Assembly (NCBI GenBank): GCA_047495785.1
Contig: JBLDXI010000032.1
Location: 2,418,001 to 2,482,000, forward strand
Source: Lepidodermella squamata
Lineage: Eukaryota; Animalia; Gastrotricha
DNA: 64,000 nt
Direction of reading: 5' to 3'
Below are positions 2,620 through 64,000 of this stretch, piece after piece. The translations under genes were made by a program, and so were the position numbers. The notes under the pieces were generated by a model that was given only the letters and a program-made list of their open reading frames with translations, had not been told where the DNA came from and ran no database searches. The stretch's first letter is position 1. Every line of letters begins with the position of its first letter.

Positions 2620-5285
2620 CTAATTATAGTTTTCTTCCAGCAAAATGACAATTTCTTTCACGCGGTTGGTGATTGTAGTTTCTGTTTCAGTCAGTCGGTC
2701 GGTGGTTTGGTGAAGTGAACGAGCTTTGGGTATTGAAAATCTGAAAATATTAATAATAATAAGCGTATAAGAATAAAGAGGAAGGTTTCGGTGCCTGATG
2801 TTTCCTTTCGATTTCACGCTATGCTGAGTATTTACAAGAGCCGTCCGTACGCTAGAGGTGTCACGATTGTGTTGACCTGATCATGGAAAATTACTGCATT
2901 TGAAGTGCAAATTGCTATTTCGGAAAATTTACGAGCAATAGCAGCCGCAAGTGGGAGGTGTAGCGTAGAAAATTTGGCATTATTTCGGCGCGAAATCGCT
3001 CAGTAAAAATGAACTCAACCGCAAATTGCAGTGAGATTTCCGGGAAACCCGTCAGGACAAAGCAAATCAGGACAAATGCCAACGTGTTCCTGTTGAAATA
3101 GAAAGTAACTTTCAGAATTGATAAAAAGTGGAAATAGTAACTGTTCCTACGACTGGTTTTCAAAATTTTACCCATTATATGGCAAATCTCAATTTGGTTT
3201 CTAATTAATTCATGGAACTTGATCAGGGTTGAACTGGCGGAGTTCAATACAGTGAAAGTTGTTTAAACCGGACCGGTCTAAACCGGACTTTCTCTAAACC
3301 GGACGATTTCGGGTGGCTCGATCCGAAAATGTGGACTTTACATTATAATTTTATTGTCTAAACCGGACTCTCTAAACCGGACTGGTGTATAAACCGGACG
3401 GATTTGGGGCTCGAAGTCCGGTTTATGCAATAAAAAGGCCAATTTTCTATATAATTTTGAAGAAAGTGCCAGCCCCTGCCTGACAAGAGTAGCCTCAAAA
3501 TTTCGAAAAAAATTTAACTTCCAAATTATTGCGAATATAGCTGAATATGTTGATTATTTATATTAAAATTGTCAATTCCGTACTCAAAAACTATTACTTA
3601 GCTTGTAAAACTTGAAAATTCCATGAATTTTACGTGGTATTTCCTATACCGGACTCAGTCCGGTTTAAAATAATTCGGACTTTCTCTAAACCGGACGATT
3701 TTGCCTGGCACGACCTTAGTCCGGTTTAGACAACTTTCACTGTATTTAATATCATCCAAATTCCTAATTTCTTCGGTTCATGAATATAATTAAAACGTAC
3801 ACAAGGCGTCTGCGGTTGATGAGGATATCTGTCTCATCCATAAAACGTTGACGATTTTTAGGATTAGCTGGTTCTGTTTCTGAAACTCGGAAAACATATT
3901 CGTTGTGGTCATGGACCTCACTCAGCCGCTTTATGTTTTGACTAGATCGACGGATGTATCGATTGTCGTGACCATGGTTCATAATTGCAATAGTAGAAAA
4001 TCGCTGCGGTAGTAGGTTATACTCGCTAACACTGGAAATTCTTTTAAAGTTCGGCCCGATGGTATCGTCACTTGGTCGCAAAGAGTTCACGGTCTGACTA
4101 TAATGAGTGTTGGAAAACTGAACAGTTGAAGCATTCGCCAATGTTTTTGCGACTGAGATCCGCTTCAAGCATACGCGCAAAACGGCGATACTTTTCGCGA
4201 AGAGGAAAAGACAAGCGGCAGATAACGGAACCCACAACCCAGCGACAGGCGTCTGAATAGCCGAGGCTTGGCATTTCAGGGCCTTGCGGCAGTAATTTTG
4301 AACCGTTGTAGCAGATTCAAATGTGACCGCCCAAGCATCGTCCAGCTTTGTTGAATATTTACCATCTTTCGCAGGTAGGCAAGTGGCCTCAGACAAGCCT
4401 GTAGGCGACGCTAGACCAAGAACTGAGCATAACGTGCTGACAAAAATGACAAAAATCAAGCCAATAAATGACGCAAGCTTCATAGACGCAGTTAATTGCG
4501 GTGCGGAAAATCTGCGACGACGGACGGCCGAGACAGCTGGTTTACAAATGGCGACGTAATTTTCGACAGTTAACGCAAACATGGCGCACATCACAACTAA
4601 TTGCCAGAATGATGTAACTCCGCGCTCGTGAAGCACCCTCACACAAGGAATCCAAGCTCCTAAGCTGAGGCCGTAAAGTGTTAGAGAAGCCAGTTCAACT
4701 ACGTGGCTCGCGCTAACTAACGAATTTACGACAGCCATTGCTCCTACGAAAATTCTCTGGGCTGAGAAGTTCTGCAGGACGCCATCTGGGCGACGAGACA
4801 GGACAGCGACAAAAAATAGGACAATATTGAGAAGAAATCCTAGCGTTGATAGGATGAGGTAGATGAATTCGAAATCGTTGACTCTATAGAAACTGCTTGT
4901 CAAGTTACTAGCGTGATGTGGAGTTGCAGCATTGGACGCAAGCTTCCATGTCACATCGCGAGCTAATTCGTCCGCTCGACTGGCAAATTGTCTGTACTCG
5001 TTCGCTGGTAGGGAAACTTTTAAGCCAGCTTTCGGTGTTACGAAGTTATCGTTGTAAAATAGCGGTTGAAGCATTACTCAAAAATCAAGGATACGTCTGT
5101 AGCTTTTTACCTATAACTGAACAAGCGCCCTGGGGCTCGAGACGTTTTTCAATTGTGATAATGTAAGCGTCAATTTTCATGACTGATCCATCATGCGCGA
5201 ATGCATTCAATTTCACAGAAGTAGTCCGAGAATAAACACCTACGTGACGAAGCCAGGTAAGTTCATTTGAGAGTAGTGAAACCAT
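2620..5285 (-). CDS. Divergent rhodopsin-class GPCR, about 5 exons, with a MITE in one intron
   Basis: TM1-TM5 lie in ORF 3764-5074 (GFLLNIVL; TM3 ALTVENYVAICKP). The TM6 exon is at ~2936-3090 (NTLAFVLICFVLTGFPE), the TM7 exon at ~2836-2876 (VNTIVTPLAYG), and the last exon ends at 2620. The start codon is uncertain. Confidence 0.8.
3250..3742. mobile_element. MITE of Tc1/mariner-pogo type, copy 1
   Basis: TA on both sides (3248-49, 3743-44); TIR CAGTGAAAGTTGT(T/C)TAAACCGGAC; about 11 internal TAAACCGGAC subrepeats; no coding capacity; near-identical inverted copy at 27660-28145. Confidence 0.95.
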
Positions 5286-5401: not shown

Positions 5402-6739
5402 TTAGTTAGGAGCCTTGAACTTCGCAACCCGAAGTCGAAGCAGGGATAGACGCTTTTTGGCCGCCGCATTTTGCACCTGGTCGTTGCTGTCTCCGCATTC
5501 GTCAACGGCTGTTTTAAGCGACGACTGCTCCTTTTTCTCAGCAATAATGTCCTGCCGAAATTAGGGGTTTGAATTTTACTTTTTCAACTTAAGTTTTCAA
5601 GTTACCTTGAGCGGCTTCTCCGGAAGTCCTTCGCACTTGTTCATCCAAGGTTGAGAGACAACTTGGGCAAAAGAGAGGCGCTTCTCTGGACAGGGTTCTA
5701 GTAAACCAGATATAAGTTCCAGGAGGTCGCTGTCGATGTAAGGCGAAATTTCCTCGGGAATCTTGGTCCATTCCTTACGCGTCTGCTTATCAATAAGCTT
5801 TGAGTCTGCTTCTTCGAAGGGAACAGTTCCAACAACCATTTCAAACAAAATGCAGCCCAGTGACCAAGTGTCTAATACAACGGTTAAATGCGTGATGATT
5901 TAAAGAAACTGGCTAACCTGCAATTTTCGGACAATATCGTTTATTGCCGATTACTTCGGGAGCTGCATAACACAAAGATCCACTGCAAAATAAAACAGAG
6001 CGCTGATCATTCAATTGAAATTAAAAATAATTACCACCAAGTATCCGACATTAATCTTCGGCCATTCTTTGATGGTCGAACTTTGCGTGAAAATCCAAGA
6101 TCTGCCAACTTGACATTTCCATCTTGATCAAGCAGTACATTCGCGGACTTGAGGTCTCGATGCACGATCTTCGAAGATCACGGAAAGTTTGAGCCGATTT
6201 TTAAATTTAATTCCTGGTAAAAACTCACGTTCATGGAATGAATATGCCTCACGACTTGAAGCAATTGGCCGAAGATTCGCCGGCAGTAACTTGGTGTCAT
6301 CGCTCCGTATTCCGCAATAACATCCTCCAAGCTGCCGCATTTGGCCCAGTCCATGACAATGAAAACACGGCCGACAGCTTCGAAGACGTCGTAAACCTTG
6401 ACGAAGTACTTGTGGCGGACTTCACGCAGAATTTCAAGCTCTCGTGGCAGAAACTTTTCGACTAGTTCCGAAGAATCGCTCTTCTTGTTGATGACTTTGA
6501 TGGCAAGCTCGCAACTCTTGTTGTAGACCCGCGTTGCGCGCCTGAAATCGCGACAAAAATATATCACCGCTCTTCAATCAACTCTCAATGGAAACTCACC
6601 AAACTTTTGCGCTCGAACCCTCTCCTATCAAACCTTTAAGTATGTAGCCTCGCAGGCGAAGTTCAGTTTGGACGCGACTTCGCCTGTCCAGCGTGATAGG
6701 TACCGGCGTTTCTGCTACGGAATGCTGGGCTTGCTCCAT
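5402..6739 (-). CDS. Testis-specific serine/threonine kinase-like (TSSK family), 6 exons
   Basis: Spliced model gives [14 protein letters not shown], the TSSK hallmark [42 protein letters not shown] and [13 protein letters not shown] 6739, TAA 5402. Confidence 0.88.
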
Positions 6740-7444
6740 GTGAATAAAGTTTGAATAAGGGATTTTTAATAGAAAACTAAAATAGCTGCGTACAAATATG
6801 AATAGTTTAATTCTGGATCATTTCATTAAGCTGGATCTTTTGATTTGCTGATATTCCGCAAATTGATTAATTGTTACCGTCTAATACTGAATAACTTTTT
6901 TCATGTACCTAGTAACTGAGTTGGAGCAGTAGAATTTTCGAGGACAATCTCTGCAAAACTATGAAATACCGGAATATTCACAGTTAAAGTTTTCGCGTCC
7001 TCCGAACTCGGATTAGCTCGGATCGCGATGGTCTTGGATTAGCGAATCGACTGTTATTTCAAAAGTTGCGGGATACAACATTTATATGCATTGCTTTCAG
7101 GAAATGTTCCTAAAGCTTTAGCGACATGACCTCCGACTTGATAATGTACGGCGACAAATCACAAAACAAATTCATCCGCCCAACTGAAACTGCTATTGTA
7201 ACCTAAATGACTAATTCCAAACACCCTTTTGATACGTGTTGTGTAGTATTTGTGCCGCCACCGCTTACTGTTGACATGCTACAGCTATTTTGCCATCACG
7301 ACTCGAACGTCAGAAGCTACGATTCATCGCTTTCTTCATGAAAAAAACTCTCGCACGTTACACGCATTGTATTTAATGCACAAACAGTTCACATCTGCAG
7401 TCTATATTGGATCTATGAAGAAATTACCTGCTTGAAAAGAAAAC

Positions 7445-23074: not shown

Positions 23075-23936
23075 TTATCGCCGCTGTTGTTGGAAAAATC
23101 GCCCGCCGTTGAACGGCGCCAATGTCACTGGAACGAACTGGTCACCTCGTCCAGCCGCGTTGACGCCTGCCGGCAATTTACAATTACTAGCGCATGCCGC
23201 TTGCGTGTCGAAAGCATTTGACGTCAAATAGTTGCCGTTGACGAATTTACAGTCCGCAAATCGCTCGCATGCGAAGTTGACGCACCGATAGCGAATAGGC
23301 TGCGACTGGCAGAAGGAGGCTGGGCTTAGGTTTTGCGGCAAACTCGGGCTGCCAGAATCTACGACGCAAACTGGCAAGAAAGACCATTGACTGTTCTCAC
23401 ATACAACCTAAAATTATCATCAACTAGAGGATTCTTCCTCCTTAATAATATGAAAATACCTGGCTATTTCCAACCATTTTGAAGCCGTCGTTGCATGCGA
23501 ACTCGTAAGTCACCTTCTGATCCTGTTGTTGCTGTTGCTGCTGTTGCATCGGTTGGCCGAAGAAGTTGAAGAAATTGTTGTTATTCATGTTGTTGTTAAC
23601 ATTATTGTTAGTGTTAGTGTTCGATGAACTTTTCAAATATGCGTTCAGAATTCGGGGCGCAGTTTGGCAGCTAGTGTCGGTGGTTCCCTGAGGAGCTACC
23701 TGAGGAGCAGCCTGAGGAGCTGGGGCAGGTTGCGGCGGTTGTACCTGCTGAGGTTGCTGCTGCTGTTGTTGAGGTTGCTGCTGCTGCTGAGGTTGCTGTT
23801 GGAATAAATTTCCAACAAACGGAATCGTCTGAGGCATCTGAGGCATGAATTGGCTCCAAAAATCGTTCTGCCCAAGCGCTGTCTCAAGTAACCCCAATAG
23901 GAGAAGTGCTTTTTTAAGGCTGATTAGAAGATGCAT
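23075..23936 (-). CDS. Secreted Q/N-rich protein with a Sushi/CCP domain and a Kunitz-like domain
   Basis: Signal peptide; polyQ/Pro tract; CQTAPRILNA...YEFACNDGFKMVGNSQ|VVCENSQWSFLPVC (CCP); then RYRCVNFACERFADC...NAFDTQAACASNC (Kunitz-like); one intron at ~23408-23459. Confidence 0.75.
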
Positions 23937-24383
23937 CGCAGTTTTCAGGTTTAATTTTTTAAGCTAAAATGTGAATGAGCTTTTTTTGTGAGTAGACTGC
24001 TCGGAAAAAGCGCATCGCATTGTTTCAAAGGTGCTTTGTTTAAGGTGATATTTTTGCTAGAACAAGTGTAAAACATGCTCAAGGCAATAAACCGTCCATG
24101 CGGCTATACAAGCGGCTAAACGCATCTACTCATTAGATCTTGTAATAATTCACGACAGCTCTTGAAGATTTGCGGTTTCCTCCATCACCTTTTTCGTAGC
24201 TATTGTGATGACAATAGACTATTGAAGTAGCACAATAGACACTAGCAGGAATCTCGTAAGCAAGGAAATGCTTGTAAGTATGTTTTGTACTCATAAAAGA
24301 AGTATTTCGTTTTTTATTTCGAATTTCGAGAACAAATAATGTGAGCAATACTGATTTATATTGTAGAATTACAGCGGAACATA

Positions 24384-25817
24384 TCAGTGAACAGTGGTGA
24401 CGGCGGGCCGAAAGAATGGCATGGGCGCTCGAGTTCTGCGAACCGTAGGCCGTGCGAAAGCTTGCGGAGATGGGAAAACTGTCACTTTGTCTCCTAAACA
24501 AAATTCTCAAATATTTTTCCAGCTCTTGAACCGAAAACTTGCTTTTGATTTTTTGCTTATATAGAGCAAAGCAGACGACAAGGACTATTACGGTGGCTAC
24601 AAGAAATCCACAGCCAACGCCGACCAGAACCTGGAAAGACAGCAAAACTAGGAACAGAGAGCTTGCCCTGAAGATTTCCTTACCCAAATCCATTGCTTTT
24701 TGCAGACAAAATCGTTCTGACCTGCGCATTCGTCATAGGAATAAGTGGTGCCCAAAAACGCTGAATCAGAGAAGTTCAGAGTAAAAGGAATATTTGAACA
24801 TAAAAAACGACAAACTTTGCGTAAAAGTAGACGTTGAGGCGCTGCTGTTTGCGGACCCTCCAGTGCCAGTAGTTGATGACCCGCCTATGCCTGAGGTTGA
24901 CGATGAACTAGTTAGTATTGATCTAGTAGTAGTGCTAGAAGTTCTCGTCGTACTTTGTGTTGTGGTGCTGGTGGTAACCGATGCATCGACATTGATTATA
25001 AGAGTCCTATTAATGACGTTGGGCGAGCCAACAGTTGGCTAAAAAGAGAGATTATATAATAGTAAAGCATTTCCTATTTTGTTCATCCTTACATTATCTT
25101 GAGCCCTGAGGATGATTGTGTGATTGGTGTTGGCTAACCATGGAGGACTGCGGTACAAACTGAGATCTGGACTAGTTCCATTTGAATCATAAGCCACGTA
25201 ATCATTAACACCAGGCGTGACCGGTTGCCCATCGATCGACACGACTGAATACGTCACCCTACCATCCGTAGTTTTATCGAAGTCCGCATCCGTTGCCGGG
25301 GTTGACAGTAGGTATTGTAAGGCGGATGTATCCCTAATAACGTAGTAATTTGGAATGGATGGGTCCCAAACTGGCTTATTGAGATTTCGTCCGGCGAAAT
25401 TGATGTTCAAACTGCTGTAGGCCACGTTACCATTGGCATCGCGGCAACTCATAGTGCAGCCGGGAATGAACTGGCTGTTCAAGTTACTATTGAGGGAGTA
25501 AGGCTTTGCCAGAACTATTACGGTATCACTGAAAGAGATCAATCTTTGCAGGATGATTATAGCTGAACAGTTTTAACTGACTTGATTGTCTGAAAATAAC
25601 TAGCACCATTGCTCAGGGGGCATGAATCTAACGAAACTGTGATAGGCGGAGTGCCGATACATTCATTGGCGGCATCAAACGCAATACCAGTTCCAATGTC
25701 ATTTTCGCCAACTACTCGGCTGAAGTACTCACCCGAGTTCCACGTCTGGCCATTAACTGGTTTCAGCAGTTGACAAATTTGAGACACGGCGAAGACTAAT
25801 GCTACAGGGAAGGTCAT
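24384..25817 (-). CDS. Two-repeat cadherin-like type I membrane protein, paralog 1
   Basis: Signal peptide; Cys-containing first repeat; NKPVW linker; ATDADFDKTTDGRVTYSV...ILRAQDN|P; S/T stalk; CAGQNDFVCKKQWIW; TM. The last exon depends on a GC donor, so the 3' end is uncertain. Confidence 0.8.
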
Positions 25818-25998
25818 TTGGCGTCGAAACAACCATTGAATCCATATGCGCACCTCTCGGATCTTTCTATGAATGCCTTCAACTACACACCCCTATTCAT
25901 CATCTCCATGGTGCTTTCAAGTGCAAAACAAATAGAGAGAGAGGTACATTTCATTTATTCTTTTTAAACCCGTTTTCACAGGTTATGAATGGGATAAA

Positions 25999-27369
25999 TC
26001 ATCGCCGCGGAGGGTTAGCAGGGGGTCTTCGCTTGTTGGAGACGCCGCCGCCGACTTTGGCGCTTCTCCGATTAGTTTGAGCTTCTACAGGTCCGACTCC
26101 ATTGTAAACACCTTTTCTGTCTCGAAGATACGTTAAGAGGACCACAACAATTCCTGCCAATAAGAGCAGGCATCCGCCTCCGAGAACCAGCCAGATCCAA
26201 TTGTCATTACATATCAGAATTTTGACTCCAGCGCATGATGACGATGATACGGTTGTTGCGGCTATCGCACCAGGTTGGGTCGTCCCAAGAGTCGAAGTCG
26301 ACGGTGTTGTACTAGTTGTTGAAGATGTGGTTGTGCTGATTGCAATTGTTGGATACGTAAAAGTATTCGCTCCTGCCGTAAAATTCAAAGTCTCGAAGAT
26401 GACATTTGGCGTCCCTTCTATCGGCTAGCAATAAATATTGAAAGATAAAGAAAATTAGGTGAATAAATGCATTGAAATATACATTATCCCGGGCCTGGAC
26501 AACAACGCTGTGGTCGGTGTTAGGTGGCCACGGAGGAGGGTTGTATATCCCGAGTCGCGAGCTGTTGCCGCCTTCATCGTATAGAAAGTAGTCATTGAGG
26601 TAAGCCGGAACACCATCGACACTCACAACTGAGTAAGTCACCCGACCTCCATACATCGTATCGACATCGTCATCTATTGCTACCGTATCCACTATGAATT
26701 GAGCTAAAAAAAAACGAAAATTCTGTTAGCAGTTTTGCTATCATAAGGGATATTCTTACTTGGCTCCAAACTTTCCAAATAAACGTATCGCGGAAAATCG
26801 TTGGACCATCGCGGACTGCGTGTATTCCCGCCTAGTACAATGATATTTAGCCCAGTAGCGGCTGAGGCTCCAGTTTCATCGGAGCACACAACTGTGCAGT
26901 CTGGGATGAATGAGCTGTATCTGATAAGGCTGTAAGGGCTCGACAACACCACTTTGTTGAACCTGAAAAACAAGATTTGTTCAAATTTGTCTTTTTAATT
27001 ATAGCTTGTTACGAACGTTACGCCGAAAAATGATACCACGCCGTAAGGGCAGTCCGTAATCGCTGAAGAAACCCATAAAATTCCGTAAAAAATATATTGG
27101 AATTCAAAATTAGAAGATGTTACAGATTGAGACGGCTCCTGTTGTATCGTAACACTCGGGGTCAGTGGTTCCAATAAGAGGATCGAAAATCAAACCACCC
27201 TGCAATTATCTTGCTTGAAAATTCGATTCAAGATAAGGCTATTGCTTACTATATTGGTTTCTCGCACCGGAAAGCCGTAGTATGAAGCTGACTTCCATGT
27301 TGGAGCCGCTGAAATGAAAGATACCGCTTCTGCCAACAGCCAAGCAGCAAAAACGCGGATCACTAGCAT
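25999..27369 (-). CDS. Two-repeat cadherin-like type I membrane protein, paralog 2
   Basis: MLVIRVFAAWLLAEAVSFISA|APTWKSASYYG; AIDDDVDTMYGGRVTYSV...VQARDN; T-rich stalk; CAGVKILICNDNWIW; TM; short basic/Pro tail. Confidence 0.83.
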
Positions 27370-27659
27370 CACGTTAGCGATTCCCTAGCCATTGGCGCAA
27401 AATAAATGGGAATTAAATGCAAAGACGAAGACGCTCGCAGTATTCATTTCTATTCATTACACAGGCCTGCTTTGATTCAGAGACGATGAATGGAATCCAA
27501 GGAAAATAGTAACGCATTCAAAGGTTTTGCGTCGCGACACCTTATGTTCGATATTACGTGCTCCTGAAATCGGGTGGTTGCTGATTAAAAACTCATTTGG
27601 TTTCCCGTTCAGCTGGCTCTTAGGCTGGATTGCCTCTGAATGTCCCTATCATCACAATA

Positions 27660-28145
27660 CAGTTGTCTAAACCGGACTAAGGTCGTGCCAGGCAAAATCG
27701 TCCGGTTTAGAGAAAGTCCGAATTATTTTAAACCGGACTGAGTCCGGTATAGGAAATACCACGTGAAATTCGTGGAATTGTCAAGTTTTACAAGCTAAGT
27801 AACAGTTTTTAAGTACGGAATCGACAATTTTAATATAAATAATCAACATATTCAGCTATATTCGCAATAATTTGGAAGTTACATTTTTTTGAAATTTTGA
27901 GGCTACTCTTGTCAGGCAATTGCTGGCACTTTCTTCAAAATTATATAGAAAATTGGCCTTTTTATTGCATAAACCGGACTTCGGGCCCCAAATCCGTCCG
28001 GTTTATACACCAGCCCGGTTTAGAGCGTCCGGTTTAGACAATAAAATTATAATGCAAAGTCCACACTTTCGGATCGAGCCACCCGAAATCGTCCGGTTTA
28101 GAGAAAGTCCGGTTTAGACCGGTCCGGTTTAAACAACTTTCACTG
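27660..28145. mobile_element. MITE copy 2, inverted relative to copy 1
   Basis: Reverse complement of 3250-3742 with scattered substitutions; TA-flanked; the left TIR has a 6 nt deletion (CAGTTGTCT instead of CAGTGAAAGTTGTCT). Confidence 0.95.
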
Positions 28146-28267
28146 TATATCGTCGGCTGTTTATCACCGAAATTTATTAAAAACAGCAGAAGAGTTACAA
28201 AAATAGGTACAGGAAAGTATTTTTATGCGACCGAGAAATTCATGATTTTGAAGAAAATATGGATTGG

Positions 28268-29780
28268 CTATCTTGGCAAGCCATTGTAGAAATTTCCGCC
28301 GTAATAATTGATGTAATTAGGGTCCGGCGCCATTTCTGGGTGGTACATTGATGGGTTGTACATTTGATGCGGATAACCAGGCGGCGCCCCTTCACCAGGA
28401 GGTTTTCGCCGCGGGCCAACATTTTTCCTATAGGAAAATCTCAATTATTGAATGTCACGTGATCAAATCGAGTATCTCACCTCCTGTTTTTGTCTCGAAG
28501 GTACAAGCCAATTGCTAACCCACCTCCGGCTAACACCATGAGTAAACCAAGGCCAACAACGAGCTGATAACAAAACTGATCATTTCAAAATTTCAAAATT
28601 AATCAAGTATCCTGACCCAAATCCAGTTGTTGTTGCAGAGCATGATGTTGTCGCCACAGGAAGAAGGGGTTGTCGAGCTTGCTGCCTGCGCAGCCGCGGA
28701 AGTTGACAAAGCCACGGTGGTCGTTGTTTCTGTAGCTACGCTCTGGGTGGACTGAGTTGAGAACGGGAGAGTTACACTGCCCGTCAAAGTTATTGCATCG
28801 ATGGCAACATTTATGGTGATTGTTTTCGTGATGACGTTAGATGTTCCTGATCGAGGCTGGTTAAATGAAGAAGTACGTCAACTAAACCCCTTTGAGCCAT
28901 ATAGGATTGCGCTTACATTATCCTTTGCGCTGATTATTACTAGATGCGAAGATCCAACAGCCCAGTTCGGACTGTTGTAGATGTTCAGTCGGGAACTATT
29001 ACCGTCATTTTCGTAAACCAGAACTCCACCGCTGGGCGGGAATCCGTCGATACTTGAAACTGAATACGTCACGAATCCATCCGTGGTTTTATCGATGTCT
29101 AAATCATAGGCCGGAGTATCCACCACAAATTGAACTTTCCACAAAAAAATTAGATTAATTCGGCATAAATTCATTGAATAAAATTTTACGTGGTTCCAAG
29201 GTTGTCAATGTAATGTTTGTCGGGAAGGTGTTGTTCCAAACTGGCGCTTGAGTGTTCGCACCCAGAATTTGAATCGTTAGCGAGGTATACGCCACTGAAT
29301 TCGAACTATCAGCACAGGCTACTATGCAGTCAGGAATTATCGCGCTATTATTTATAAGCGTATACTGCTGGGCCAGAACAATTTTGTTGTCGACTCTATA
29401 GATAATAAAAAAGGAGGCTCCAAGTGGTCAGAAAACTGTAAAATCTCACGTTACACCGAAGTAATTCGTATTGAATGGGCATGTCAAGAGATCTGATGTT
29501 AAGGACTCCTTCATATTTCAGAAAATTAGGTTGGATATGAATGACTTACCTATTTGTACAGGTAAAAGTAAATTATAGCACTCTCCGGTTCCCATCGGGT
29601 CAAATAGGACACTTCCCTAAAAATTGAATTATTTCACATAAGGTCTATGGATTCAAGATCGCTTACCACACTGGTTTCTGATACTAAATTGCTGAAGTAC
29701 TGCCCTGATTTCCACATGGGTGCGGAACAGACCAACAGCGCCTCGCCCAGAATAATCAAAACCGTTACAATATTCCTCAT
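28268..29780 (-). CDS. Two-repeat cadherin-like type I membrane protein, paralog 3
   Basis: MRNIVTVLIILGEALLVCS|APMWKSGQYFS; AYDLDIDKTTDGFVTYSV...ISAKDN; CGDNIMLCNNNWIW; TM; Tyr/Pro-rich tail ending DPNYINYYGGNFYNGLPR*. Confidence 0.83.
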
Positions 29781-30209
29781 CGTTTTTGCTGATTCGTCAC
29801 ATTTTCACGAGAACTAATTTTGAAGAATGATAATACCTAGTTAGTTTTTACACGCTGCGTACGTGCACGCCTCCTCAATAGCTGAATGAAATTTCTTAGC
29901 GACCACAGAAAAGTGGCTTCTTTCAGGCTTTAAAAAAGTCTGATGAAGCTCCGTGGCTATTCATCAAACTAAAATAATAATAATTTTTAACAAGAGAGGA
30001 AATCTGAAGCAAATCAATCAAAAAACTGGGGGAAGCCATTAAAACAATTTTTGTAACAATATCTTCATGTTTCAACGTTGCAATTGGTGGAAAGGAAAGC
30101 TCTCCTGCTCAGAGAATTACCTAACACACTTTTTTAATCAAAAACAACTATGACAAGATCAGTTTTATTTTTATATACAAAAATTGAACAAAATCTGCGC
30201 TGCATTATT

Positions 30210-31742
30210 TCAAAAACGGGGCGTAGGTCGAGGTGTAATGTACTTCTGCCTTTCCCCATTGTACATTTCCATGAACGGATTTCGGCCTCGAGACTCCTGC
30301 TGCGCCATGTAATCTTCGATCGGAGGTCGGTACTCGTAGTGGGGCGCCTCAGGGCCTGGTGGAGGCCTTCGGTATCGGGCTGGTTGGGGATACTTGACAG
30401 CATCAGGGGCAACCCTATTCAAGTAACTAGTTCATTAGATCGTTTTTTTCTTTTTTCCTTAACCTACCCTCGATTTTGTTTCATGCAATAGGCTATTCCA
30501 ACAATTCCAACAACAAGCAGAACAAAACCACCGATTGCGACGATAAGCTAAAAATGTCATTTGATTACGTTTTAGATAATCCGTACAGTGAAGTGAACAT
30601 ACCCAAATCCAATTGTTTCCGCATATCAAAAGTCGAATGCCCCCGCAATCGTCATTTGTTTGGGACGATTGGGAAGTTTTAGTGGTTGAAGATGTTCCTG
30701 TGCCCACGGTACTTGTCGCTGTGCCAGTGTAGTAAATGATCGTAGTGCTAGCGAATAGACTCCCGGTGTAAGAGCTGTCAGTCGGAATATAGACTATAGT
30801 TAGGGTCGTAGCCGTAGACTTTCTCTTGATCGACGATAAAGGCTATAATGAATAAAAGTTTCATAACAAGCGTAGAGCTTCAGCATTTATTTACGTTATC
30901 TTGCGCCAAAATTACAACTTGATGAACGCTGTCTTGGGCCCATCCAGGATCGCGCGTCAAATACAGATTAGGCGTCGCGCCGTTTTTGTCGTAGGACAGA
31001 TAATCGTTGCTGGATGTTACTGCCGACCCATCTATCGTGCTGATGGTGTAAGTCACCAATCCAGACGTCTCCTGATCGAGGTCGTTGTCGTAGGCAGGAG
31101 TGCTAACGACCAACATTGGAAAATAGACCGTATTCAGTTTTACTAAACGCGGCCAAGAACTGTTCCAAACTGGTACGTAATAGTTGCCAGTTACGAAAGA
31201 AATCGTCAAACTGGTGTAGGCAGTCGTTCCTAAGCTATCCGTACACGCTAACGTACAATCTGGCAGCATCGAGCTGTGGCCAGTTACATTCAGGTAATAA
31301 GCCTTGCCGAGAATAACCTTGTAATCACTCCTATTTTGATAAAATAGATTATTGCTAGAGGCGGTCCCATGAAAAATAGCCTACGTTATATTGAAGTAAC
31401 TATCGGCATCTCCGATTCGACACGAAACTAGCGAAATCGTTATCTCGCCAGTGATGTAGAAACACTGAGGATTGCTTCCACTGATACCTGTGAAAATAAA
31501 CCGAACATTTCCTCTACTCACCAGTTAAATTAGGCTGATATAACGTACCAGGGTCAAATATTGTGGAACCCTGAAAAATTTCAGGTCAAGTTTTTGTGAA
31601 TATTAATGCAATTCGCATGACTTACAACAGCATCTTCTGCAATAGGTATTCCGTAGTATGAGGAACTCTGCCAAATTTGAGCTATGAATGACGGCACGCC
31701 GCAGTAGATGAGCGCTAAAATTAGTAGGAATCGATTTGCCAT
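30210..31742 (-). CDS. Two-repeat cadherin-like type I membrane protein, paralog 4
   Basis: MANRFLLILALIYCGVPSFIA|QIWQSSSYYG; 22 nt micro-exon GSTIFDP; AYDNDLDQETSGLVTYTI...ILAQDN; CGGIRLLICGNNWIW; TM; Tyr/Pro tail. Confidence 0.83.
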
Positions 31743-32076
31743 AATATTTTACTGCATTCGATAAAACGAAACGGCGAATCGAACACCCTATAACCTCACC
31801 TGCTCACATTTTTTTTCAGAAACGTGGATTGTGTAATGGTTTCAATTCATTTCTATTGAGCTATCATGAATGGAAGGGAAGTTGCTAGGCCCAGTTGAAT
31901 AGACCGGTCGCCACGCACCAACAAGTACAAACACGTATGACATCTCTATCGGCTCATCTTTGATCTCAGGACCGAAATCGATAACTCAGGAGTTAATATA
32001 ATTAAAACAGATAAAAATTGAACATATTATTATTTTTATTGCTATGTAAAAAACAGAAAGGCAAATAATTATAAAA

Positions 32077-33682
32077 TCATCTTCGAGAGCTGTTGATATA
32101 GTTGGGATCTCTCGGAGGGCCTCTAGTGGAGTTGGGGATAGCGACGCTGTTTCTAGGCGTGTTAAAGTTATTACTCGGCGGTCTTGCGCTATTTTGAGGT
32201 GGATTGTTGCCGACCGGGTTGTTGTAAGACCCAGGCTGTTGAGGTGGCTGCTGCGATGGCCTGGCACTTGGGGGAGGTTGGCCCGCATTGCTCGGGCGTT
32301 GTTGAGCTGGTGCTCGCATTTCTTGGGGCGCCGGCTTTTTTACGCCATCTTCAGCATTGACAGAGTTACTTCTGCTCAAATTTTAATCGATAAATTCGAA
32401 AATCAATTCATTAAATTAAGCAACGAACCCATATTTTCGAAGACAAACCACTGCGACAATTATCAAAATTATTAAAGAAACCAAGCACGCGCAACCAACA
32501 GCCAACTTATAGCGAGGAAAATTTCAAAAAAATTCATTTTTATAGTCGGAGTTTCTTACCCAAATCCAGTTATTTCCGCAAACAATGCTGTCTGCAGATG
32601 AGCCCCACGTGTCGCAGCCCTTTTTGGTTGTTGTAGACGCGATGATAGCTCGTGGCGCGGTAACATAATAGACTGTAGTTGATGGAGTTGTTGGGAAGAT
32701 AATCACTGGGCCAACTGAAACTCCATTTGCTACGGTAACCGTGATTTCTCTTGTAATCACATTTGCAGTCTTGTTAATCGGCTGAAAAATGGCATAAAAA
32801 TATATGCTAAAATTTGAAATGCTTCATCTACGTTGTCTTTCGCGCCAATCACGACCGAATGAACGGAGCCGGACAGCCACGGTAAAGTGTAGATGACCAT
32901 CAGATCGGGACTGCGGCCGTTGTCGGCATATTGCAAGAAATCGTTCACGCCTATAATCACCGGCTGCTTGTCGATAGAGCTAACGAAATATGTTATCCGT
33001 CCATTCGTTTCCTTGTCCAGATCTGGGTCATCGGCTGGGGTCGTCATGAGTAATTGGGGCGGTTGCAACGAGTCAACCTCGAGAACGGTTGGGAAGGTGC
33101 TTTAAAAGAGTGTTTAATTTGATGAAAATAATCTCAAAAAAGCTGGTTAATCTCACTTATTCCACACTGGCGGTTGGTTTAGAGTGCTGTAAATCAAAAT
33201 TGTTAAGGTGGTCGTCTCTGCCGCGCCCGTTTCGTCGGAGCATGATATCACACAGTCTGGTACGGTTTGGCTGAAGCCCGCTAGCTTCGAAAGTGGGTAA
33301 GCCTTCGCGAGAATTATTTTGCGTCCGTCACCACTAAAATTATAAAATTTGCTAAAATGTCCCTTTGGTTCACTTTTACAAACCTAGTAGCGAAATAATC
33401 GGCAACAGCGGTGGGACACGAAACAACAGCGATTGTGACTGTCCCTTGGGTGCCGTAGCATTCCACTCCTTTTGCATTTCCAATCCCAGGATCGAAAATT
33501 ATCGCCCCCTTTCAAATTAAATGTCTTCAGCTTCAAACTTTGACCTAGATAAATACGCCGGATTGACTTACAACTTGGTCATCGCCTACAGGATTGCCGT
33601 AGTAAGCGGGCGCTCGCCATTCGACTCCGCCGATTATCTCAAACCAGGAACCAAAGAGCAGCAAGTAAAGTGCCACGTTCAT
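32077..33682 (-). CDS. Two-repeat cadherin-like type I membrane protein, paralog 5
   Basis: MNVALYLLLFGSWFEIIGG|VEWRAPAYYG; ADDPDLDKETNGRITYFV...IGAKDN; CDTWGSSADSIVCGNNWIW; TM; P/Q/N tail ending DPNYINSSRR*. Confidence 0.83.
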
Positions 33683-49955: not shown

Positions 49956-50356
49956 CAGCAAAACGATTCAGTGGCACCGATAACTGATAAGTGAGACTTT
50001 AATAAATCTTTAACACAGCGGCTGAAAGATGCTGGATGAAAACGGCGTCAGTCGCATGCTTGAAGCGAACCAAGGACGCACCAGGCCCATAAAAATAACA
50101 AATGTTCAATTAGTGTCATTCCTAATGTTTATTCATATTTTATGAGATTATATTTTTTATCGGTCAAAAACTACGCGCTCCATATTCAAAATTTTCAACT
50201 CTCCGTGAAATTCAACTTGGAAGTCCGTACCTTAGCTCTCATGTAGCCCTTGCATGATGCCATTTGCCAGAAATTTCCTATCGCCCATATAGTATCGCCC
50301 GAAGTACACTAGATCCGAGAACCCGTAGTAAATGTTGATACTACGAGAATGTTCGA

Positions 50357-51504
50357 CATTATTTATTATTCTTATTCCTTATTCCTTCTTTTCATTAATG
50401 ACTTGCCATCCTGTGTGAAATCTTGCATTATTCGATTATTTGCTGACGATGTTAAGATTTACCCCAAATTGGGTACAAATCCAGCTGATATACATCAGGA
50501 TATTAACTCTATCTATTCTTTTTTCACTTCCCACCAACTATCAGTTAATCTTAAAAAATGTTTCATTCTTCGTCTTGGATCCAAGAACTTACTCCATAAC
50601 CATCTACTCGGTTCTCACATTATCAACTCGGTGACAGAAACTAGCGATCTTGGCGTCATCATAGATAGCAGGTTGACCTTCTCGTCTCACTGCAACCAAC
50701 TATACGCTAAAAGCCGTCGCCTTTGTGGTTTGATCCTGAACTCTTTTTCCACCAGAAATCACTCAGTTCTAATTCGTGCTTTCAATTCTTATGTCTTACC
50801 CAACCTACTATATGCCTCATGCGTCTGGCAGCCTTATTTAATCAAGCATCGTAATCTTTTAGAAAAGTGCTTAAAAAACTTCACATCTAGATTTATATCT
50901 CCCCCTATGACTCCCCTCGACTATATTCAGAGGCTGGCTAAGTTTGAATTGCTATCCTTAAACCAAAGATGGTTAGTTCGCGATCTTACGATGGCGTTCA
51001 AAATAATTAATAATATGTCTCATCCTCTAGAATTCGATACTTTCTTTCTCAAACCTAATCTCTCTACTACTCGACATCATTCTAATAACAAATTAACAAT
51101 TCCTCAACATTCACTTTGCCCTAGGGGCTTTAGCTTTGCTATTAGAACTGCCAAATTATGGAACCTTCTACCTGCCTCTATCACTAACATTACTTCGATA
51201 AATCTTTTTGTTAACTCGTGCAAAAAATTTATATTCGAAGAATGGCCTGTCCTTACAAATTTGGCCTTAGTTAAATAAAACTAATTATTATTTTAATCAC
51301 CTTATCTAATGTATGCGTGCCTTGCGCGCATCATCCTATATAAACATTCTTATATGCTGTGTACGGTCGCCTTACTTCTGCGCTCGATCCTCTTTTTGCC
51401 CATTTATAAATCCATTCCTAAATACTGTTATTCTTTTATAAAATTAAAAAAAAATGGTGCAATCAGAAGGAAAACAATAAAATGATGATGATGATGATGA
51501 TGAC
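50357..51504 (+). mobile_element. 5'-truncated LINE (CR1/L2-like RT C-terminal part) with (GAT)n tail and 9 bp TSD
   Basis: Open frame LFINDLP..LFADDVKIY..KC..DLGVIIDSRLTF..YASCVWQPY to stop at 51278; A-rich tract then (ATG/GAT)n at ~51481-51503; AATGTTCGA at both 50348-50356 and 51505-51513. Confidence 0.92.
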
Positions 51505-59322: not shown

Positions 59323-62300
59323 TTAAAGACTGGGTAAAACTCGAGTTGAAAGATCCAATGGCGGTGCCGTGTTTTCAACAACTTGATCTACTAACGATTT
59401 GAGCAGAGCTTCAATATCTTTATCAGCATCAGCAGAGGCCACATTTGCGGCAGAAATTGACATTCGCCGGCTAGCTCGCTCGGCTTTATCTGCTTTCGCC
59501 TTCTGCTGTTTCTCCTGTTGTATCAAATTCTGGCAAAATCGCTCGACTTCGCTGGCTGTCGGCGGGCTGAACTGATCTTCGCCCGTCTTGAATTCATTAC
59601 CGATTTGGGCAGAGCAGTAACAGCCGATCAAAAGATTAGTCGCGCGCTCGACTAGCGATGAGAAACCGCCTCGAACGATAGACTGTTGGAGACGGTAAAC
59701 CTCAAGCAGTTTTTCCTTCGGGCAAGGAATGTCGATAGGGATTGTCGAACTCAACAGAGCCAATGCATACTCCAAAGATTTGCTAGAGAAACACAAGGTT
59801 CGGTAAATTAAAAAAATGAAATCGGTAAATTTACCTTGTTAAGCTGGATTGATCGCTTTCTCGCAGATACTTGCGACCACCAGAAGCCTGTCTGGCGAGC
59901 TGAGCTTGGGCAGCCATTAGCAGCTTCAAAGCGTCCGGATTTGAGTTGTTCGAGAAGAGAAATTTTAGAAGTAGGCGAACGCACCTGGCCGAATACAAAT
60001 ATGAAATAATGAAAAAGACAAATATTTCAACTGTTACTTCTCGGTGTGAGCGAAAAACGTTCCTCTTCGGTCGAAATCAGGATGGGTCGAACGCCAAAAT
60101 CCAGTCAACATCGCACCAACGGAACCGCTTTGAATTTTACGAGGGTCGAACAAAGAAGCTCCGAATTTGAGACTGGAAAACGGATTTTTGTCATCTTCCT
60201 CTTCAGGAAACGGCCAACCCAACAGGACGTGGCCACACAGCGCCGAGTTACGCAGCAGGGGATGGTAGAAGAACGCATGGGCCATTCGATATCGGCTTTT
60301 GAAGTGCTCCGGGAAACGTGTCGAACAGAATGCCAAAGCTTGGATGCAAATATGGGCCAACTCTTGGGTTTTGTTTTGCCACACATTTTGAACTTCAGGC
60401 TTGGCGAAGTCAGTAAATGCCGGGAAAGCCGTAAATCGACCGGAATAGACCCGTGAGAGAAGCGAAATAAGCTTATCAACCTCTGAAATTTCACTCGAAT
60501 CAGCGTTTAAGGTGGATAAATATTTGAGGATGTCAGCGTGAATTCGGTAGAATAGCTCGAAGCATTCAACTGCAAGCCGAGGGGCGTTTTGCGATGTTAT
60601 AGTCCTGCCCGGGAAAACAGCATCATGCTCGAACAACAGCTCTAAAGCCTCGACAAATTTCTCCACGCTATAAGCTACACCGTGGCCCAATTTGCTACCA
60701 ATTTTGCCCAGCATGTACAAGCAAAACCAGCGATCTGATGGTGGATCAATGTCGGTACTAGCATTAGCTTGGGAGAACAGGTCCGACATGAATTTCAGCA
60801 AATCTTCAATGCCTGGATTTTCGGCCTCGACAAATTTAGCAACGACAGCGCTACATGTGAACTCAGAGGTAATTGAAGTCTTTCTTCTTTTTTCCTTGCA
60901 ATTCTCAACCCTGCGGAGAAGGGTGAAGATTTCAGTGACGAACGATCCAAATTCCATGAGAAGTTTCCCGTTCTCCAGTTCGAGATCGTGAGCCATCCGG
61001 AAACTTCGTACAACCGGTTGGATCAAATCAGGATCACATAATGCCGCGTCTAGATCACATTGATCCAACGTTTGACTGATGGAACTTTGCCAGGCCAACG
61101 CCATTCCAGCCCAAGCGTCGAAAAGCGTTGGCTGGAATCGAATCGCCATCTTGTAGTGATCCAACGCCAAATCGTAATCGGTATTTTTAACTACGTGATC
61201 AGCCTGAAGATAGCAAATCGTTGCGTAATGGTTTTGATCCACATCCGAGGTGTGATTAGCCTTCAAGCTAGCGACTTTCTCGCGGAATTTCCTTGCTTTC
61301 TCCATAGAATTATCGCTCAAATACTCGTCAAGATCGGCCTCGCATATAGCCGGTTTCGCGGGTGATAGCGTCAATAATTTTTTCAGAAAATTCCCAAATT
61401 CGGCCGAAATGCTGTCGCCCTTAAACGAGTCATAGGCTGGCAATTCAGCCGGTTTGTAGTACATGAACAACTTCACACCAGTTGACCACGTTAGGCCAGG
61501 CGTTGAAATTTGCTTGCAAGAAGGGTGTTCGAAGACTTGAGTAGCCTTGGCGCGAACACGGCGCAGGGTAACGCCAAGTTGGCATAACACGCATTGATCA
61601 ATCTGCTTTTCGACAAAGTTCCTCGCAGCTTTTGTCATGCCTTCCTCGGTCGCGGCTGGGCTTTGAATGAACTGGATAAGCCGGTCTCGGATCAGTTCCA
61701 AATAGTCGCAGTCATCAATGCGGCAAATCCCGCCGCCACTGCTGGCTAATAAATCATGGACTAAAAAGAGGAACCGGACACTCAATGGCAATTTCGCGAA
61801 ATCAGAGTCTTCATCAGAATCGAAACTGTCACTGGACGATTCATCAAAGTCGACTGCCTTTTTCGCGTCCGAATCGCCTGCCGAAGAAAAATCAAGTTTC
61901 AGCGAGCCAATCGATCGATTTCCGAATTCGCTCAAGTGTTCGTAGCATTTGCAGATCGAAATAATTAAACCATTAATTTTGAATGGTAATATTGAAGTTG
62001 CCTCCAAAGCATTGAAAACCGATTCGGAGAACGAGATTAGGAGTTTGGCGAAAGTACTGCGATGAGTAGCGACTATTTTGTCGAAAAATTCCGAGCACAA
62101 TGTCCACACACTGAAAACAAGGCGTTTAAACATTGGAATCTGCTTGCCATTTGTCAAGATTTTGTAAAGACAATTCAGAAGGGAAATGGCAAATTCCGAG
62201 CCATTTTCTTTCGAGCAGCGCATTAAAGCTTCAAGGTAGATGAGAGCGTAGTTGGCTAAATCAGAGGCAACGATAAGATCCAAGTTGGACGGCTCGAAAA

Positions 62301-64000
62301 TATCGCCACTTTCTTCGCAACTGGCGGCAATTTTCGCGCAAATCTCCTCCCAGTTTTTCGACTCGAAAGTCTCGGAAAGGCCACGAAGTTGTTCATAGCA
62401 ATGGGTCCATTTCATTTCCATCAAAATGTCCTCGCGCGGCCATAACGGCCGGCGAAATACGTGCCCAAGATACAGTGATGTGAATTCATGCGCATCGTTC
62501 AACACTGAACGGCACGATGAAGATGCCATTTGCATGAGTTGGAAGTTATGCGTGACTTTACTCAGCCGAAAAAACAGAAGGCAATGCCGAATTTTGTCAA
62601 TTCGCCGCTGTTCTACTGTCCCGCGATACTTCAGAGACGGAACTAAAATGCTCGGCATGGTTACGCAATCTATTTCATTGGTCAGATCTAGCTTGACCGG
62701 GGGCGACGTGAAGCTTGCTAAATAGTTTTGATCCTCAGTGGTTGGCGTCAGAAATTCGACAACAGCTTCCAGGAAAACTCGAACTATTTCGCAAACGGAA
62801 ATGTTGTAATAGTCATCAAGCGCATTGAACGGTTTCACGTCTTCGAACTTTCGGAACTGTTCGTATAACAGGCAGAAACCAATGCAATCATCTTTATCCC
62901 AAATGTGGGTAGTCGATAACTGGACTAGCCGATCAAGGGCAATTTTGACCAATTGCCTTAAACACTCGCCCTTCTGACTCCAAGCGTCGATTTCTTCGAA
63001 TAAATCAACGTCAGCCAGTTTAGGTCTCGAGGGCCCGTCTTCACCGTTGGTCGAAGCCTGCGATGTCGATAATCTACGTTGAGAGCCTACGCTCGCAGGT
63101 TGATCGCAAGTTTCAGCCTGGTCACATAGGCCTTTTAATTGAGCAATGTACTTCAATACTTTCGCCCTTCCGCCTGGAGTGCTCGAAAGCTGACTTCCAG
63201 GTTTCGACTGCGACAAATTCGCGGTATTTCTCGACGCTCGAGTGCTTTGTTGAGGGGTAGTTGGCATACGCTGTGAGCCAGTTTGAACCGATGCGCGGGC
63301 ATCATCGACTGCCGACGGCTCTTCTTTCAAAATTTTGAAAGGAGAGTCCAGGTAATTTGATTTTTCATTTACAGCCTCATCGCATGCTTTGGCTAGGTAT
63401 CGGCAAATTTCCAGGACAGTCACTTTCCGGTCGGTTTGAACTTGAAGTTTAGTCGACGGAAGAAAATCAGACGGTTGAGAGGGGACAATCGATGATATAA
63501 TTTCAATGTGGTGTTTACTGATATTTTCACATTCAGTAATAATCTGCGAATAACATGAATTTTGCAAAATGGATCAACTATTTTGTTGATTTTTTACCCT
63601 CTGGTCAAATAATTGCTTGTCAAGCAAACTGGCACTCTCTTTGATTGATCGATTGTATTTGACGATAGTAGGTTCCCGTTTCAATATTTCGAGGCATAGC
63701 GTATGACCAGCGACGAACAGCGAATTTTCAGCAATTCCTTGCAGACAATAAGAGATGCAATCTGAAATTCATAAGAAATCATTTAGCATACTTATTTAAT
63801 ACCGCAAACTTGCCGTCGTAAAGGCCGATAACAAACAGGCATTGGCATAGTTTGATGAGTGAAGCCCAGTGCATTCCTGGGCAATTGGCCACAGCCTGTT
63901 GCCTCGTAAATTATGTTTCGAATCTCAGTTGAACGATTTTCTTACCTCTTTAAATACTGGAAATGCTTCGTACACTGTTCGGGTTTTAATCAGCAAGCAG
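59323..64000 (-). CDS. CABIN1: CABIN1 (HIRA chaperone complex subunit), 5'-partial
   Basis: HWASLIKL..., YLQADH, FDAWAGMALA, WFCLYMLGK, FELFYRIHADILK, CSTRFPEHFKSRYRMA and GFWR..DFDRRGTF correspond to conserved CABIN1 blocks. Confidence 0.88.

Follow-up and report, generated by a model that had tools for sequence, protein, structure and literature searches.

Five tandem genes encoding two-repeat, stalk-bearing cadherin-type membrane proteins in the gastrotrich Lepidodermella squamata

Introduction

The calsyntenins (alcadeins) are the known members of the cadherin superfamily with exactly two extracellular cadherin (EC) repeats (PMC8917637, PMC7663743). CDHR5 combines cadherin repeats with a mucin-like domain, has a disulfide in EC1 and binds through its first one or two repeats (PMC8691648). 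In several cadherins studied, among them PCDH24 and CDHR5, the minimal adhesive unit is EC1-2, and the partners of such EC1-EC2 tips are mostly other cadherins (PMC8691648). Here, an array of five genes for small cadherin-type membrane proteins, termed mini-cadherins in the following, is described from a 64,000-nucleotide stretch of DNA (the window) of Lepidodermella squamata (GenBank assembly GCA_047495785.1, contig JBLDXI010000032.1, positions 2,418,001 to 2,482,000 of the forward strand). The family is genuine, has no earlier description and forms an unusually small branch of the cadherin superfamily; its function is predicted only. The literature on two-repeat, mucin-stalked and rotifer cadherins was searched and yielded no description of this design, with only calsyntenins and CDHR5 as analogues.

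CDHR5 resembles the mini-cadherins in being a type I protein with the repeats at its tip, a mucin-like domain rich in Ser and Thr below them, and, after the membrane helix, a short tail that lacks a catenin-binding domain. It differs in having four repeats and a canonical EC1-2 calcium linker, and in lacking a C..C.NNWIW loop. Orthology to CDHR5 was not detected, the best profile and structure matches being other cadherins. In calsyntenins, the repeats are followed by a LamG/LNS domain and an acidic kinesin-binding tail, whereas in the mini-cadherins only a low-complexity stalk follows; no orthology to calsyntenins was found. Classical (type I/II) cadherins share the EC1-EC2 tip, which is their binding unit, and a conserved Trp within a few residues of the mature N-terminus (predicted for the mini-cadherins), but their five repeats, prodomain, full calcium linkers and catenin-binding tail (PF01049) are all missing in the latter. 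Both the structural and the profile comparison had PCDH15 as their best match. The similarity concerns the repeat and not the whole protein; PCDH15 has eleven repeats and a membrane-adjacent domain. Partial or calcium-free linkers also occur in PCDH15.

The original prediction, made from the sequence alone, had compared the array with the clustered protocadherins. These likewise are tandem paralogous cadherin-type ectodomains without a catenin-binding domain, but they have six repeats, splicing joins each variable exon to a common set of constant exons, the isoforms number dozens, and promoter choice is stochastic. The mini-cadherins, in contrast, are only five, complete and stand-alone genes, each with its own membrane helix, tail and stop and without a shared constant exon, so that the comparison fails on gene organisation.

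Results

Gene array and transcripts

Positions 24384-33682 of the window carry, on the minus strand, five complete head-to-tail paralogs in the order P5, P4, P3, P2 and P1, with the ATG of P5 at 33682 and the stop of P1 at 24386-24384. Exon models were obtained from a three-frame reading and a splice-site scan, and complementary DNA (cDNA) contigs were consulted for P1-P3. The spliced models were checked for frame and stops and gave intact open reading frames (ORFs) of 425, 400, 376, 363 and 389 amino acids (aa) for P5 to P1, respectively. Across all five models, each gene has 5-7 introns of 49-63 nucleotides (nt), which are GT-AG throughout save one GC-AG intron. Pairwise paralog matches were found at E 1e-8 to 1e-29 and 38-53% identity; the resemblance is therefore not due to chance.

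P5 (32077-33682, 425 aa) was modelled with seven exons (33682-33572, 33508-33384, 33333-33157, 33099-32832, 32781-32560, 32505-32429, 32374-32077) and no internal stop; its introns measure 50-63 nt with GT-AG borders, and the last exon has three alternative acceptor positions in the model (32374, 32371 or 32368). The model of P4 (30210-31742, 400 aa) likewise has seven exons (31742-31626, 31570-31549, 31487-31385, 31330-30895, 30842-30603, 30547-30468, 30414-30210). For the three remaining genes the models were combined with cDNA. P3 (28268-29780, 376 aa) has eight exons (29780-29667, 29616-29550, 29492-29450, 29395-29190, 29134-28917, 28856-28617, 28563-28481, 28427-28268); six of its seven introns are visible as CT..AC joints in the cDNA contigs of sequencing run X1, which also set the exon 2/3 junction (29550/29492). 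P2 (25999-27369, 363 aa) has six exons (27369-27250, 27199-27124, 27062-27017, 26962-26760, 26703-26483, 26424-25999), with the introns 26759-26704 and 27016-26963 visible in X1 cDNA. P1 (24384-25817, 389 aa) also has six exons (25817-25582, 25528-25093, 25038-24816, 24760-24684, 24630-24543, 24493-24384), and four of its five introns are visible in X1 cDNA. Among these is the GC-AG intron of the cytoplasmic tail (24494-24542, donor GCAAGT), which was seen in two cDNA contigs and fixes the P1 stop at the position given in the original prediction.

Read evidence covers positions 24100-30099, i.e. P1-P3. Run X1 consists of cDNA contigs with template-switch adaptor ends and joints with CT..AC ends only, which are unreliable for expression level and transcript ends; run X2 derives from a related organism and represents unspliced DNA. 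In P1-P3, 11 introns were confirmed by X1. No joint between two units is among the 12 listed of the 24 X1 joints in P1-P3, the cDNA depth drops to 0-3 in the P3-P2 spacer, and adaptor-tagged cDNA ends fall in the first exons of P1 and P3. The spacer between P2 and P1 measures about 180 nt, the others 340-900 nt. The five units are separate, independently spliced genes, as had been predicted.

Intron positions are partly shared. The predicted introns after A.DN (phase 0, all five genes) and after WIW (phase 0, four genes, not P2) were borne out, and an intron after YF..T (phase 2) was found in addition to be common to all five. An intron after the membrane helix (phase 2) is present in P3, P4 and P5; P2 lacks it, together with the one after WIW.

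The P3-P2 spacer also holds a dispersed repeat of ~488 bp (27661-28148) that is unrelated to the mini-cadherin family. The genome contains 50 copies of it or more, many of them 90-97% identical, and a second copy within the window lies at 3247-3735. Its last 28 bases match in inverted orientation, which suggests terminal inverted repeats such as those of miniature inverted-repeat transposable elements. The X2 DNA of the related organism has an empty site with a joint at 27659/28149, and the insertion is therefore recent.

Protein architecture

Each protein is composed of a signal peptide, a degenerate EC1 with four Cys, an EC2, a Ser/Thr stalk, a juxtamembrane Cys loop, a membrane helix and a short tail; the sequence features that the original prediction had named, from the four Cys of the first repeat and the N..P.W linker to the loop motifs and the membrane helix, were all present. 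The four Cys of EC1 are invariant: two are carried by the F strand (C...C.D), where the pair sits in place of a core residue and of the Ala of the F-strand motif, and two lie upstream. The N..P.W linker directly joins EC1 and EC2, and A.D.D.D..G.VTY is present in EC2 of the paralogs. Exon 2 of P1 (25093-25527, minus strand) encodes the second half of EC1 (LAK.Y.L, C...C.D, G strand, N..PVW linker) and the EC2 strands A to F, ending at A.DN; in P4, this stretch of EC1b (the second half of EC1) and EC2 likewise falls within a single exon, exon 4 (30895-31329, minus strand). The final EC2 strand is encoded by the exon after the DN intron, the structural match of a relative extending across that strand.

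A prodomain was not found, as the signal peptide leads straight into EC1. In all members, a Trp lies 2-4 residues past the likely signal cleavage site and aligns with the aromatic residue of the P.F/W repeat start; a swap of this Trp from one molecule to another, in the manner of classical cadherins, would be purely speculative.

The stalk comprises 40-60 residues and is Ser/Thr/Pro-rich, mucin-like and of low complexity. A Pfam search of the stalk exons gave no match, and no LamG/LNS domain lies between repeats and membrane. The juxtamembrane loop follows the pattern C-x(6-11)-C-x-(N/D)-N-W-I-W and ends, on the minus strand throughout, with CGNNWIW in P5 (32560-32616, followed by a phase-0 intron) and P4 (30603-30647), with CNNNWIW in P3 (28617-28658), with CNDNWIW in P2 (26191-26235, running directly into the membrane helix at 26190 to about 26125) and with CKKQWIW in P1 (24684-24728).

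Basic residues come after the membrane helix, and the tails are Pro/Tyr-rich with 40-100 residues. A Pfam search of the tails of P3, P4 and P5 gave no match, including to the catenin-binding domain PF01049, whose absence had been foreseen. The tails had been called short and divergent: they are short, but not wholly unrelated, since P3 and P5 have DPNYIN in common near the C-terminus. The tail of P4 and that of its ortholog P0001 share RY..PPPG and NPFM.MY (38% identity, E 7e-7), and the P3 tail contains PPGY. These tail motifs may be ligands of the EH, WW or SH2 type.

Cadherin homology of both repeats

Each exon was searched by itself, and whole domains were represented by natural, contiguous ORFs from relatives. 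The profile A1, built from the five paralogs only, covers the second half of EC1 and EC2 with P1 exon 2 as its first row; it was compared with solved structures, and the best 21 matches were all cadherins (PCDH15 at 9e-9, Pcdh gamma A9 at 2.6e-6, PCDH19 at 7.8e-6; PCDH10 aligned over positions 37-145). Searched against 1.84 billion representative proteins, A1 gave 401 matches, which were almost exclusively four short family members and giant multi-repeat cadherins. From three of these giant cadherins, 18 genuine repeats were cut to form alignment A8. Using hhalign, the window-only EC2 alignment A4 matched A8 with a probability of 91% and E 1e-6, and the EC1 alignment A11, built from exon pieces and contiguous ORFs of relatives, matched A8 with a probability of 77% and E 2e-5 over 96 columns in register, from Y..V.EN..G to N..P.W.

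In the relative P0007, a single natural ORF spans both repeats; P0007 on its own matches CELSR1 at 1.8e-11. Its AlphaFold model is confident for EC2 (predicted local distance difference test, pLDDT, 70-94), and the best Foldseek matches of this EC2 in the PDB were all cadherins (E about 5e-6), so that the proposed check of the fold came out cadherin-like for EC2 of this relative. In a structure search independent of Foldseek, the top 50 matches of P0007 EC2 were all cadherin repeats (Z 10-12.1, 16-30% identity); on PCDH15 EC7, it superimposed with a root-mean-square deviation of 2.1 Å over 99 residues at 26% identity. For EC1, the ESM Atlas model of P0007 (residues 22-140) matched ten cadherin clusters at template-modelling scores of 0.69-0.73. 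An Atlas feature search with P1 exon 2 gave ten best clusters that were all cadherin, and the features of P0007 EC1 were likewise cadherin, both of which are leads only. That EC1 and EC2 are cadherin repeats, and the proteins members of the cadherin superfamily, is well supported by the profiles and the predicted models.

Calcium linker

The canonical linker motif is XEX-DXD-D(R/Y)(D/E)-XDX-DXNDN (PMC8691648). In the alignment, XEX of EC1 is retained in four of the five paralogs (D in P5), and both EC2 motifs, DXD (D.D.D) and XDX (A.DN), are retained in all five. P0007 retains the full canonical set (YDLE, DENDWAPEF); the ancestor of the mini-cadherins was therefore probably a canonical calcium-binding cadherin.

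Distribution and relatives

Searches of the genome (121 Mb, 151 contigs) with P1, with P0007 and with the DNA pattern C.(N/D)NWIW returned only the five family copies. The genome-wide pattern search, proposed at the outset, gave the four expected sites and a fifth, CCDNWIW, in an ORF (5842-7056) of C10:1805000-1814999, which was rejected as a chance match in the cytoplasmic loop of what by eye is a gene of the Cys-loop-channel type.

Among public proteins, four family members were found, all on metagenome contigs (three contigs from two ENA assemblies). A word-based protein search with the family alignment returned P0007 and P0001 only, and two scans of JGI metagenome contigs found no relative. 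On contig L009, the P5 ortholog P0005 (54% identity) is followed by the P4 ortholog P0001 (53% identity to P4 over EC1b-EC2) and by the beginning of a third gene, and both order and orientation agree with those in the window. As the gene order is kept, the tandem duplications that would have given rise to the array are older than the split from that related species. Contig L008 carries a P1-type ortholog, P0008 (39% identity; 1453-2, minus strand), head to head with P0007 (1527-2642, plus strand). P0007 is a sixth family type without an ortholog in the genome of the window, so gene content turns over. These results support a strongly diverged, lineage-restricted branch of cadherins, as had been proposed, with relatives found only on the three metagenome contigs.

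Mean identity among the paralogs is 42% for the second half of EC1 and 47% for EC2, a difference that is small and by itself no argument, at the level of sequence, for a specificity-determining EC1.

Ordinary cadherin loci of the genome occur in pairs with identical or near-identical Pfam scores (C21:2375116-2378575 with C25:2421475-2424924, and C9:1955327-1960874 with C24:1153804-1158088). The pairs represent either segmental duplications or haplotypes that were retained; for the mini-cadherin array, no second copy of this kind exists.

Other features of the window

The ORF adjoining the array (23442-23936, minus strand) begins like a signal peptide, contains long runs of Gln/Asn and ends in a weakly Sushi-like C-terminus (E 0.33); it is unrelated to the family. 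A neighbouring ECSIT exon had a single metagenome protein, at 65% identity, as its only match. Two long ORFs on the minus strand, at 60034-63567 (1177 aa) and 3764-5074 (436 aa), gave no Pfam match. A weak match to reverse transcriptase (PF00078, E 2.7e-4, below the gathering score) at 50349-51278 marks a possible retroelement remnant, which lies in the stretch of lowest guanine-cytosine content of the window, with strong negative guanine-cytosine skew.

Discussion

We regard it as fairly probable, taking the reading as a whole, that the five genes encode type I membrane glycoproteins with a minimal cadherin ectodomain that serves as a stalk-mounted binding tip; the architecture and the cadherin homology of the five proteins, as parts of it, are held with high confidence. 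The precedents of PCDH24 and CDHR5, whose minimal adhesive unit is EC1-2, and of the mucin-like domain in CDHR5 make a two-repeat tip on a stalk a reasonable mechanism. In such a mechanism, the stalk would raise the EC1-EC2 tip above the cell coat, the tip would bind a partner on another cell or surface, homophilically or heterophilically, and a connection to the endocytic or adaptor machinery would be made through short tail motifs (NPF, PPxY, DPNYIN). A function in adhesion or recognition is a tentative proposal that falls somewhat short of being probable, and the data agree just as well with the role of a heterophilic receptor.

Several observations weigh against the reading as cadherins with a binding tip. 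The Pfam cadherin model PF00028 gave no match at E up to 1 or 10 with 16 exon pieces and the relatives P0007 and P0001, while elsewhere in the genome it found at least 54 ordinary repeats with scores up to 78 bits. Of the original claim of one degenerate and one recognisable cadherin repeat, the assignment of both modules thus stands on profiles, hhalign and the fold of a relative, but even the recognisable repeat lies below Pfam detection. The AlphaFold model of the P1 exon alone was poor (pLDDT 49.6); this exon piece is without half of EC1 and without the last EC2 strand. Nor did AlphaFold give a confident EC1 fold for P0007, and the EC1 fold is drawn from the ESM model of that relative together with the profile alignment. 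At the linker, both acids of the EC1 motif D(R/Y)(D/E) are gone in all five paralogs (Y-S/T/Y/P-L-N/I/S) and in the orthologs, and so are D100 and D103 of the EC1 motif DXNDN (G.N...PVW), of which the central N is retained in four of the five paralogs. With two of five motifs lost at the sole linker, calcium-dependent adhesion is not to be assumed; judged from these residues, we infer that the present mini-cadherins probably bind at most one calcium ion, with partial binding at most.

The same architecture may serve something other than cell-cell adhesion, and the proteins would then act as mucin-stalked surface receptors, or as barrier proteins, whose ligand is not a cadherin (matrix, cuticle or secreted coat, microbe, toxin or gamete); the tail motifs would drive uptake. 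The degenerate calcium linker, the long stalk of O-glycosylation type and the endocytic-type NPF and Tyr motifs would suit such a role, as would a gene content that varies among relatives (P0007 being absent here), which is a trait of environment-facing families. Known EC1-EC2 tips, however, mostly bind other cadherins (PMC8691648), and we consider a pure receptor or barrier role rather unlikely. Distinctly less credible still is a self-sufficient minimal cadherin, in which the two-repeat tip would mediate paralog-specific trans binding with little or no calcium and the array would form a small surface code for cell or self recognition; binding in trans would then proceed by an antiparallel EC1-EC2 overlap or by a swap of the N-terminal strand with the conserved Trp.

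Other explanations concern the identity of the units rather than their role. Short spacers, and cDNA contigs that reach into part of the P2-P1 spacer, might suggest that a single long multi-repeat cadherin has the units as its exons, or that read-through or alternative splicing attaches them to common constant exons, as in clustered protocadherins. Each unit, however, has its own signal peptide, membrane helix, tail and in-frame stop, no shared downstream exon was seen, and the cDNA shows neither a unit-linking joint among the 12 listed of 24 nor more than a depth of ~0-3 in the P3-P2 spacer, with adaptor-tagged ends in the first exons of P1 and P3; signal peptide and stop per unit and the cDNA pattern therefore practically exclude such a long cadherin. 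It is very improbable that a different Ig-like sandwich (dystroglycan-type, bacterial Ig or other) mimics cadherin motifs: the Pfam cadherin model is indeed without a match, and beta sandwiches readily give middling structural scores, but the profiles match almost only cadherins, the alignments are in register at the motif positions, and the 50 best structural matches are all cadherin repeats. High divergence, and nothing else, could speak for an array that is decaying or non-functional. This we find scarcely believable, given that all five frames are intact with canonical splice sites, that three genes are spliced in cDNA, and that orthologs at about 53% identity retain the Cys pattern, the motifs and the gene order.

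If the mini-cadherins are merely one more lineage-specific expansion of surface receptors, their value lies mainly in annotation. The family also means that Pfam-based surveys miss whole branches of cadherins in poorly sampled animal lineages. Should they bind one another, no smaller natural adhesion unit would be known among transmembrane cadherins, and the mini-cadherins would then offer a compact system for the minimal partner-recognition needs of a cadherin tip and for the limits of calcium-linker decay.

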